Positions 35,631 to 38,600 of a DNA stretch of 64,000 bases are shown piece by piece. The DNA lies in NCBI GenBank assembly GCA_002269645.1, contig NIVC01000583.1, forward strand, positions 186,001 to 250,000, written 5' to 3'. The notes beneath the pieces are model-generated. The model was not told where the DNA came from, ran no database searches, and was given only the letters and a program-made list of their open reading frames with translations. How positions within the stretch are numbered: the stretch's first letter is position 1; each line of letters opens with the position of its first letter. Made by a program: the position numbers and the translations under genes. This stretch comes from Macrostomum lignano (lineage: Eukaryota).

Positions 35631-38600
35631 ATGAATCGTGGAATGCCGCGGAGCACTGAAGCAGCAACTGCAGCTGTGCCATCGGTTGCTGCTGCCACAG
35701 TCGCCGCCGAGGCAGCCAACAGGCGTCTGATGGCTGTCCGGCTGCACCAGCTGGCGGCCGGACTGACAGCGCACGGACTCAGCCGGGTGGTGGGCGAGGC
35801 AAGCCAGACTGGCCGCCTACTCTGGCTCTCTGTGTTCACCTGCGCTCTGCTGGGAGTGAGCCAGCACACTGCCAGCCTGGTGAAGCTCTATCTAAGCTAC
35901 CCTGTCGGATCCACAGTTCGTCAGGAGGTCAACGGTTTTGAGTTCCCCGACGTCACCTTGTGCGACTCGATGCTGAAGAAGTTCTTCCTATACAATGTGT
36001 CGTATTTTGATAGCGCGCGAGACAAAAGTTTTACAAGGTGACTTTTTTTATTCCACTGTACATAGTCTTAGAGAAAGCGGGGATTCACCTACACCTGAGT
36101 TCGTTTCAGATGCATGTAGAAATGCAGGGTTACATGTAGATGGGGAAGGACGGTCTAGAAATCAAGTTTGGCTACATGCAACTTGAACAATTCAAATGAG
36201 AAGGCATCGGTGAGTGTAGCCAAAAACGATCAGGCCCGGATCGAACCGAATGCAATCGGTAACTTTTTGCGAAACCAGTGAACTAGTTTCTAGATATCCA
36301 GCCCTTTCAAGTCGACCTTTTACTCCTGGCTCGCTTGAGTTGATATCCCCATTAAACTGAAAAAAATTAGGTCTTCTTTTAGTCTGCTTCTTTTAGTTTT
36401 TGTTTAAATTAAGGCTCGTTCACACTGCATGCTGTTGCGTGATCAACTACGTTGGCGCCCCTCAAAGACGGCCGGCCCCCTAAGTAAAAATCCTTGCTTG
36501 TACATACATGTAGTTCTTCGTCGCTTGGAACATCAGTCGCGTGGTTTGACGACTCAATTAGTGTCTGCCAGGCTGTTTGAACGAGCTTTAATTATGCGAA
36601 AGTCATCAGTGGATTTGCATCAATTGCTACCCAGCAACACCATGATCGATTGATTGTAACCTGATTGATTGATTGATTGCTGACCTCAGACTCCCAACCT
36701 CCGGGTTTTTTTCAACCCAAATATCTGAGTCATGTATCAGTTTGTTAATTTAAGAAGCACCGGCCAAACCTGCAGGTATTCGCAGGTCATCCAGACTCTT
36801 CTTGGCTACAAGTTCGGCTGGGAGACGAAAGCTTTCGTCAGAGCCACGTACACAGCCTCCGGCCACAAGTTCAACATGTCCAAAGTCAGCGCCAGAGTTC
36901 TTGACTTTCTGCTCCACTGCGAGTTCGATCACACCGCCTGCGACTTTGGAAACTTCAGCCTCTACTATGACAATCAGTTCGGCAACTGCTACACGTTCAG
37001 GCCGGCCTGGCGGCGTCTGGGCAGGGCTGGCGCCTCCGCCGGCCTCATCCGAAGGCGTATTCAGCATGCCAGTGAAGTATGAGACAGACTAGGCCCATGG
37101 GCTAAGGTCTGCGATGCTTCACGCCTGCCCCTATCTTCAGCAGGTCAAGGCTGGTGGGAGGTCTGCACCCTCTATTTGCCTCTGGCAGCCGCAGACCCCC
37201 CCCCACGCTGTCTCGCAAGTCGACCCAGGGTACTCGTCCCCGCGTGTGTTCAAGGCAGTCCCTAGGGCTGCTGGACAGACTGGGCTCCGGCGCTGGCGAC
37301 CCTATCCAGTGGCTTCGGCCGAATTTGGGTATGCGGGTCTGGCTCGCCAACCTGCAGGCCGTGGTACTGCTCAACGTACTCTCTAATGCCTAAGGTGTTG
37401 ACCGTGCCGATGGGCTGGAAGGCCGGGGAGTAGTCCGGTCGCAAGCGGTCCCCCTCCTGGTGTCGGGCCAGCCTTGAGGGTGCTATTGGCCTACTGCCCG
37501 GTCAGGTGGAGCGGCCGGGTGGGTACCGCGCCCCTTTGAGGGTAGCCCACCAACCTTTTATCATGGCCTTCGAGCCGACTATGGATAAACAAGCTATTTC
37601 TAGGGACGGGGACCCTTCTAAACCCCAACCTCAGTCCGAAGGACCGGCCGGCCCTGCTGGCAGATCCCAACCGACTGATTCAACTGTGGCAAAGGAAGGA
37701 CCGGCTGGCTCTGCTGGCAGATCCGACCAGAGCTACCAAACTCAAAATACCCTAAGACCTGCCAGCTCCGCTGGTGGATCTAAGGGAACCGCGAGCTCTG
37801 AGCCTAAAGGACCGGCCAAATCTGGCAGATCCGATGAAGCTCAGCGGGCTCGGCTTGAGCGCAAACGCGCTAAACAACGCGCCAAAAGGCAGGCCAAGAA
37901 GGGAGCTGCGGGGGCCAAAGCGGCGGCGTCCACCATGGATGCTGAAGCGACTGGAGTCCCAAGGCAACCAGGCGGGCCGGCCGGTGGAAGCTCCAGTAGT
38001 TCAGCGGCGGCGCTCCCTGGAGCTGCTGCCGCGGCTGCTGAGGCCGAAACCACGGCGCAACAAATGGCCACTGCCAACAAGGAGGTTCCTTCGGGAGCTA
38101 CCTTTGCGGCGAAGGCCAAGGCCAAAATCCCGGGAGTGATCATCCAAGGTCGCGACCAGGACTGGACCACTGATCAGCTTCAAAAAGTGTGGAGTGCTGT
38201 TGACTCCTATCTGATTGAGCTGACTGTCGAGGAGGGAATCTCCATCGGCGTTGAGCGGATGGTGCTGCGAAGCACATTCGTTCTTATTGCTCCTAGCAGC
38301 GAGGAGGACGCTCGGCGGCTGCTCCAGCGGCTACCGACGGTCTCCTTGGATGCTGACCTTGGTGGAGCTCTTTTTCTTCGCGAGGGCCAGCGTCCAAAGA
38401 CGATACCCTATGTGGTTTTCGTCCCTGCTAAGAGCACCGCAGCTGGACCAGACGTTATTCGCCGGGTCCTACTGCGTCTGAACCCCGACCTCCCTGCTAG
38501 TGGACTGGTGTATCACCGCAAAGTCCGCAGGGGGGAGACGGGCAACTCAATTGTCCTCGGCCTTTCCAGCACTTGGGCGAGTCGGTACCCTAATGGATCC

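Follow-up and report, generated by a model that had tools for sequence, protein, structure and literature searches.

How does a 993-bp piece of a host gene come to stand, identical in every letter, on both sides of a retrotransposon, and with limits that coincide to the base with the two ends of that element? The question is raised by a window of 64,000 nucleotides (nt) from the flatworm Macrostomum lignano (contig NIVC01000583.1, positions 186,001-250,000, assembly GCA_002269645.1; all positions given below count from the start of this window), in which a gene of the ASC/DEG-ENaC family (amiloride-sensitive sodium channels) harbours a long interspersed nuclear element (LINE) that is itself interrupted by a second LINE. 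We think that the 993-bp repeat is most probably a very long target-site duplication (TSD) made by the insertion of the outer LINE, and that a 477-bp pair around the inner LINE is a second example.

A block of host DNA at both ends of a LINE

Direct comparison of the two copies of the block (Table 1) shows the same base at 993 of 993 positions, their offset being 12,752 bp throughout. This is what a previous, sequence-only reading of the same DNA had claimed by eye, and the alignment of both copies that it proposed as a check gives full identity with ends that are sharp on both sides: the bases that adjoin the match differ on the left (T versus A) and on the right (G versus T), so that it cannot be extended by even one base. 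In a blastn comparison of the whole window with itself, this pair is the sole long repeat with 100% identity, and an exact repeat of such a length cannot have arisen by chance. Between its two copies the comparison detects one more long direct pair, that of 477 bp. With no difference in 993 positions, the 95% Poisson bound on the divergence of the copies is about 0.3%, which agrees with the earlier view that the duplication is very recent (or else was made by the assembler).

The block is host DNA. Open reading frames (ORFs) to the left of it, inside it and to the right of it match PF00858 (amiloride-sensitive sodium channel) in colinear order. The first 20 nt of the intron (36038-36057) are unique and lie between the donor of exon A and the start of the block; inside the block, the start of exon B is preceded by a CAG acceptor; past the downstream copy, the reading frame of exon B continues unbroken (...SAGLI/LLLYPPS...) up to its donor. 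Once joined, exons A and B produce one continuous match to PF00858 (profile positions 5-211, 77 bits), compared with 44 and 31 bits when they are taken separately. Read one after the other, the left flank, a single copy of the block and the right flank make up one colinear ASC gene. The block is therefore native to the host, and it is the 11,759 bp between the copies that have been inserted. The host origin that had been proposed for the block is therefore confirmed, and the duplicated ORF, rightly described as identical in both copies, corresponds to the 5' portion of an exon of the ASC channel; all else in the block is intron.

The insert opens with a 5' untranslated region (UTR) and ORF1 and closes with the stop codon of ORF2, a 94-nt 3' UTR and a simple-repeat tail. 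The breakpoints of the duplication are thus the ends of the element, as had been suspected, and a random segmental duplication would indeed not be expected to produce such breakpoints. The 5' junction (37050/37051) reads ...GGCCTCATCC / GAAGGCG and the 3' junction (48809/48810) reads ...CAAGTCAAA / GTACATAG, in agreement with the strings quoted previously; there is no microhomology at either of them. The termini of the block are GT...CC, and no short duplication was found outside it (CCACT versus TGCTG in the outer flanks). Rfam and tRNA scans of the window gave no match, so that the block contains no known small-RNA gene.

The outer 5' junction maps inside exon B, at 49802/49803. The truncated copy of exon B upstream of the insert continues for 32 nt into the LINE before it meets a stop codon (ORF 36732-37082), and the distance from the donor of exon A to the intact exon B is now 13.5 kb. 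No relative of the joined exons A and B was found at E <= 1e-10 in a large protein collection that includes M. lignano gene models; the ASC gene may be unannotated, perhaps owing to the insertion. Another direct pair, of about 230 bp with 87% identity, has one member upstream of exon A (34869-35098) and its partner within the intron that precedes the last exon (53281-53510). This is probably a short dispersed repeat resembling short interspersed nuclear elements (SINEs) or miniature inverted-repeat transposable elements (MITEs), with no tRNA or Rfam match.

Two LINEs, one nested in the other

The outer LINE lies in sense orientation to the ASC gene and consists of about 450 nt of non-coding sequence followed by ORF1, ORF2, the 3' UTR and the short tail that adjoins the downstream copy of the block. 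Its ORF2, which encodes an apurinic/apyrimidinic-type endonuclease (APE), a reverse transcriptase (RT) and an RNase H, is broken by one nested insertion (the inner LINE with its 477-bp duplication) and by what looks like one frameshift in its unique APE-coding portion; a further frameshift is confined to the upstream copy of the 477-bp block. Elsewhere it is free of in-frame stops, with 1,072 codons open downstream, and the single-base indels could be long-read errors.

The nested insertion repeats the architecture of the outer one on a smaller scale. The 477-bp block is coding sequence of the outer ORF2, colinear on both sides, and its copies differ by a single one-base indel. The upstream copy ends at the 5' end of the inner LINE and the (GTAA)n tail of this element adjoins the downstream copy, the 3' boundary being uncertain by up to 3 nt because of a TAA overlap with the target. 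In both elements, then, a simple-repeat tail directly abuts the duplicated target, one of them ending in ...AAGTCAAGTCAAA and the other in (GTAA)n.

The inner LINE is complete; its ORF2 gives full-length matches to Exo_endo_phos_2 (E 5.5e-22), RVT_1 (E 2.5e-30) and RNase_H (E 5.4e-13) in Pfam, and the pieces of the outer ORF2 have the same three domains. No Pfam family was found for the outer ORF1; it shares with the inner ORF1 a homologous domain of about 138 aa (25% identity, E 5e-6). Because identity between the ORF2s is 40% and the ORF1s have in common this weakly similar domain, the elements belong to two different families of one group. The 993-bp and 477-bp cases are two independent insertions, by two families, within 12 kb, each with a duplication far above the usual length.

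Both elements can be identified as APE-type LINEs: the APE precedes the RT in ORF2, there are no long terminal repeats (LTRs) of their own and no integrase (Pfam profile searches found no integrase, protease or gag family in the insert), a simple-repeat tail abuts the target, and the target duplication is of variable length. This duplication is longer than 100 bp, and its inner limits fall, to the base, on the 5' end and the 3' end of a single LINE, as expected of a long TSD. Among solved structures, the endonuclease best matches those of TRAS1 (1wdu, E 3.7e-17) and R1Bm (2ei9, E 3.7e-9), and the RT those of human L1 ORF2p and R2; one UniRef relative of the inner ORF2 bears the automated name "R1DM". 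The endonuclease most resembles that of the R1 clade, and yet the TSD of about 14 bp and the usually site-specific insertion of this clade are not found here, the duplications being of 993 and 477 bp. No restriction-like endonuclease (RLE) was detected: in the two ORF2s, the final 172 and 177 aa yield only a weak match to zf-RVT (E about 0.1), with only about 60 aa after the zinc knuckle. An element of the Dualen/RandI type was considered and rejected, since no Pfam-detectable RLE stands beside the APE and the stretch after the knuckle is short.

The stop codon of the inner ORF1 and the start codon of ORF2 overlap in the motif TAATG (41572-41578), which suggests that translation of ORF2 may be coupled to termination of ORF1. 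A similar stop/start overlap is known from an R1-clade element.

Many UniRef entries from M. lignano show 95-100% identity to the inner ORF2, which therefore belongs to a young, multi-copy family. As a separate observation, dozens of M. lignano UniRef models contain a piece of about 200 aa of the inner-LINE ORF2, again 95-100% identical and in many cases including the RNase H, fused to host domains that have no relation to it (GPCR, lectin, thioredoxin, kinase, Ras-associating). Such models are either annotation chimeras or the result of frequent insertions in or next to genes. A search for internal repeats in 77 related proteins (many of them chimeric M. lignano models), used as a proxy for other long TSDs, found none.

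Two further likenesses deserve mention. A near-identical motif, GGCC(C)TCATC(T)C, occurs at 37040-37050, immediately left of the outer 5' junction, and at 39604-39615, immediately left of the start of the 477-bp duplication. By a rough estimate only, it is probably there by chance; the two places are break-points of different kinds in the two elements. The lengths 477 and 993 are also close to three and six times about 160-165 bp, which, with two values only, we set aside as numerology.

Table 1. Coordinates of the host exons, the duplicated blocks and the two LINEs in the window
Feature	Position	Strand	Description
Host ASC/DEG-ENaC exon A	35631-36037	+	PF00858 match; AG/GT donor at its end; reading frame and donor read from the sequence
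Upstream copy of the 993-bp duplication	36058-37050	+	Intron 36058-36775 (718 bp) and start of exon B 36776-37050 (275 bp); 100% identity to 48810-49802
Outer LINE ("element A")	37051-48809	+	11,759 bp in total, own sequence 5,890 bp; the remainder is the nested LINE and its 477-bp duplication; ends in ...CTAAGTCAAGTCAAA
Outer LINE ORF1	37506-39068	+	Open, 520 codons, first ATG at codon 20
Outer LINE ORF2	39108-48715	+	APE, RT, RNase H, C-terminal CCHC-like knuckle; broken
Upstream copy of the 477-bp duplication	39616-40091	+	Outer-ORF2 sequence; 99.79% identity in self-blastn
Inner LINE	40092-45483	+	5,392 bp, oriented like the outer LINE, (GTAA)n-type tail
Inner LINE ORF1	40653-41576	+	307 aa, open
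Inner LINE ORF2	41576-45394	+	1,272 aa, open; APE aa 69-251, RT aa 527-779 (full Pfam profile), RNase H aa 973-1101, C-terminal CCHC-like knuckle
Downstream copy of the 477-bp duplication	45484-45960	+	Outer ORF2 carries on from here in one open frame
Downstream copy of the 993-bp duplication	48810-49802	+	Intron part 48810-49527, start of exon B 49528-49802; runs on into the remaining exon B
Intact host exon B	49528-49891	+	Acceptor AG 49526-49527, donor GT 49892
Downstream ASC exon, approximate bounds	51200-51610	+	Open stretch; PF00858 profile 230-322
Downstream ASC exon, approximate bounds	53582-53908	+	Open stretch; PF00858 profile 407-454, second transmembrane segment

A long target-site duplication as the most probable origin

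The anatomy of the locus can be explained through target-primed reverse transcription (TPRT) with two widely separated breaks. The APE of the outer LINE would have nicked the bottom strand at 36057/36058, 20 nt into the intron, and the 3'-OH at this nick would have served as primer for cDNA made from the LINE RNA, beginning at its simple-repeat tail, and so created the 3' junction. The top strand would have been broken or primed not some 10-20 nt away but 993 nt downstream, in exon B (pre-insertion position 37050/49803), and its 3' end would then have primed the second strand at the 5' end of the LINE, giving the 5' junction. Filling in of both 993-nt single-stranded stretches would finally have duplicated the block. 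Equivalent events on a 477-bp scale would have taken place when the LINE of the second family entered ORF2 of the outer one. It is from the product that we infer this order of nicks, and the distant break in the top strand might be due to the endonuclease of the element acting far away, to a pre-existing nick or gap, or to a break in the sister chromatid.

Several points weigh against this interpretation. It is based on two events in one window, and look-ups of exact products (inner ORF2, outer ORF2 piece, exon-B ORF and a UniRef relative) matched no further genomic copy and no empty site. The putative ends of the elements are fixed solely by the boundaries of the duplications and by host colinearity. 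The identity of the copies could stem in part from consensus polishing, and a mis-assembly, in our opinion unlikely, is conceivable in a neopolyploid and repeat-rich genome. R1, the closest characterised clade, gives TSDs of 14 bp (2-14 bp outside ribosomal DNA, rDNA; PMC2718515), so that a duplication of such a length is not expected from the endonuclease alone, and the sequence carries no sign of what broke the distant top strand.

Alternative explanations

The first alternative is in fact a variant of the long TSD. The end of the cDNA would have been joined to a pre-existing break in the sister chromatid, about 1 kb past the nick, resulting in a small tandem duplication bridged by the LINE. 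L1-bridged tandem duplications are known in tumours, where this origin has been proposed for them, and their anatomy is identical (PMC7058536). These tumour events are rare and reach sizes of megabases, whereas we see two events in 12 kb, both of them in the sub-kilobase to kilobase range, which suggests a local and regular process. At a single locus the two routes leave indistinguishable products; all in all, we consider the sister-chromatid route unlikely.

The second alternative is an assembly artefact: only one copy of the block would be real, the insertion would be an ordinary one, and the second copy would come from the joining of haplotypes or homeologs. Such a concern is legitimate in M. 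lignano, a recent polyploid whose genome is repeat-rich and hard to assemble. The 993-bp copies are, moreover, 100% identical, and those of the inner pair differ by one single-base indel alone, which is typical of long-read errors. Against this, the reads must hold both novel junctions (the end of the block with the 5' end of the LINE, and the 3' tail of the LINE with the start of the block), and a mis-join would be expected to fall within sequence that is shared, whereas here two unique points match both ends of a LINE. The sole route to such a structure would be the independent insertion of the composite nested element twice, 993 bp apart, on two haplotypes. It would also leave to be explained a second duplication, with the same architecture and another length (477 bp), inside the element. 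We therefore infer that the assembly is correct here, and regard an artefact as quite improbable.

In a third scenario, no distant second nick is needed. Having reached the 5' end of the LINE RNA, the RT would switch template and copy a nascent sense transcript back to the nick, where the cDNA would anneal; the transcript would be the ASC pre-mRNA in the outer event and the RNA of the outer LINE in the inner one. As the model requires, both insertions are sense to the transcription unit that they hit; the block is made up of unspliced intron and exon, as in nascent RNA, and neither 5' junction shows microhomology. Sense orientation in two events out of two has, on the other hand, a 25% chance, the copies are without any mark of an RNA origin, a switch onto an internal position of an RNA or onto a nascent one is not documented in the cited literature, and staggered breaks give the same anatomy with fewer assumptions. 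We find this scenario improbable, and no less improbable the more general proposal that APE-only LINEs of this group in M. lignano regularly make "TSDs" of 0.5-1 kb by switching to the nascent sense transcript. If it were true, the outer limit of a duplication would mark the end of the transcript, and there would be a new TPRT route to exon duplication that involves no second endonuclease, unlike the one proposed for the Dualen element discussed below.

The two remaining possibilities can be dismissed more rapidly. A tandem duplication of the 993-bp host block that existed before a LINE landed exactly at its joint would lead to the same final structure and has nothing specific in its favour; it demands that both ends of the element coincide by accident, to the base, with that joint, and that the same happen again for the 477-bp pair, and on this double coincidence we rejected it as highly improbable. 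That the 993-bp repeats are the LTRs of an LTR retrotransposon has next to no chance of being right: identical direct repeats around an interior that codes for RT and RNase H would be called as such by LTR-finding programs, but these "LTRs" consist of host intron and exon sequence and are colinear with the ASC gene on either side (a colinearity that by itself refutes the idea), their termini are not TG...CA, the outer flanks show no duplication of 4-6 bp, and the interior has an APE and a simple-repeat tail in the place of integrase, protease or gag.

Having weighed these alternatives, we continue to favour a very long TSD for both insertions.

Comparison with known long target-site duplications

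The nearest parallel to the lengths observed here is Dualen-4b_cRei of Chlamydomonas reinhardtii, whose target duplications vary from hundreds of bp up to about 1 kb, the median being 900 bp, and are read by the authors as the product of widely spaced nicks (PMC9977147). Dualen carries both an APE and an RLE, and the long TSDs have been tentatively credited to this pair (PMC9977147), whereas the M. lignano elements show an APE and no detectable RLE. The Dualen events were also seen de novo, in mutation-accumulation lines of an alga, while ours are deduced from a static assembly of a flatworm.

A second parallel is human L1, likewise an APE-type LINE. In cells deficient in nucleotide excision repair its TSDs have a median of 1,495 bp and reach several kb, whereas in HeLa cells TSDs longer than 100 bp are seen in less than 10% of events (PMC5223499). 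The cause proposed for these large TSDs (0.1-6 kb) is a break in the second strand that is distant from the first nick and unrelated to it (PMC5223499, PMC7058536), and the L1 authors noted among the consequences exon duplication and a possible loss of the insert by recombination between long TSDs. The human events are somatic or come from cell culture and are tied to a repair defect or to cancer, whereas the M. lignano events are found in the assembly of an animal line; in addition, L1 has a poly(A) tail instead of a simple-repeat tail, and the clade differs. Human L1 is also not known to have an RNase H domain.

R9 of bdelloid rotifers is another LINE with an exceptionally long TSD; according to the summary in PMC9977147 (which cites Gladyshev and Arkhipova 2009), it is fixed at 126 bp and made at a specific rDNA site, in contrast with the lengths of 477 and 993 bp at the non-specific sites described here. 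Finally, the LINEs of the R1 clade (TRAS1, R1Bm, Drosophila R1), which provide the best structural matches to the endonuclease, share a two-ORF layout with the M. lignano elements. They are mostly site-specific, whereas the M. lignano elements have hit an intron/exon and another LINE, with TSDs that are 30-70 times longer.

We found no report in the literature on the TSD lengths of M. lignano LINEs. A distant relative is present on a 138-kb ENA contig (L001), where a pair of 209-bp repeats with 76% identity (5771-5968 and 18468-18676), 12.7 kb apart, encloses about 12.5 kb with two LINE-like regions, one of them about 34% identical to the M. lignano elements. No clear flanking duplication was seen around this relative; the pair might represent either a dispersed repeat or a long duplication of some age.

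Kilobase TSDs are thus already documented, and rare; what M. lignano adds is an APE-only LINE doing so twice in an animal genome.

Other features of the window

The first 20,000 nt of the window (1-20000) are very rich in minisatellites, with a 10-bp unit repeated 136 times (200-1561), a 19-bp unit repeated 41 times (4511-5290) and a 28-bp unit repeated 38 times (18054-19131). The last of these is located between exons of a DBC1/CCAR-like gene on the minus strand (about 16.4-20.7 kb), with SAP, LAIKA, DBC1 and S1-like domains. Two inverted repeats of 112 bp (26445-26556 and 27684-27794), 95.5% complementary, surround about 1.1 kb within an AT-rich stretch; in appearance they are the terminal inverted repeats of a MITE or other small DNA transposon. 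At the other end of the window, 55734-57143 and 60076-61443 (minus strand) are tandem paralogous genes, apparently intronless, for MFS/Nodulin-like transporters of 469 and 455 aa, and it is this paralogy that accounts for a 73%-identical repeat at 56589-57107 and 60889-61407.

Implications

Of all the steps of LINE integration, the cutting and priming of the second strand is understood least. Two duplications of 0.5-1 kb made by APE elements without a detectable RLE would indicate that dual endonucleases, as in Dualen, are not needed for TSDs of this length. Structures of this kind also mimic LTR retrotransposons, and pipelines that search for LTRs would mis-call them in the M. lignano genome.

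For the host, a long duplication alters what it costs to have a gene hit. The 5' junction hits an exon, and yet the duplication supplies an acceptor and 718 bp of intron, so that the whole of exon B is kept downstream of the element, with a truncated decoy exon upstream of it. Long direct repeats make possible the exact loss of the insert by recombination, and are raw material for exon duplication; in the present case, recombination between the 993-bp copies would give back the original ASC gene exactly.

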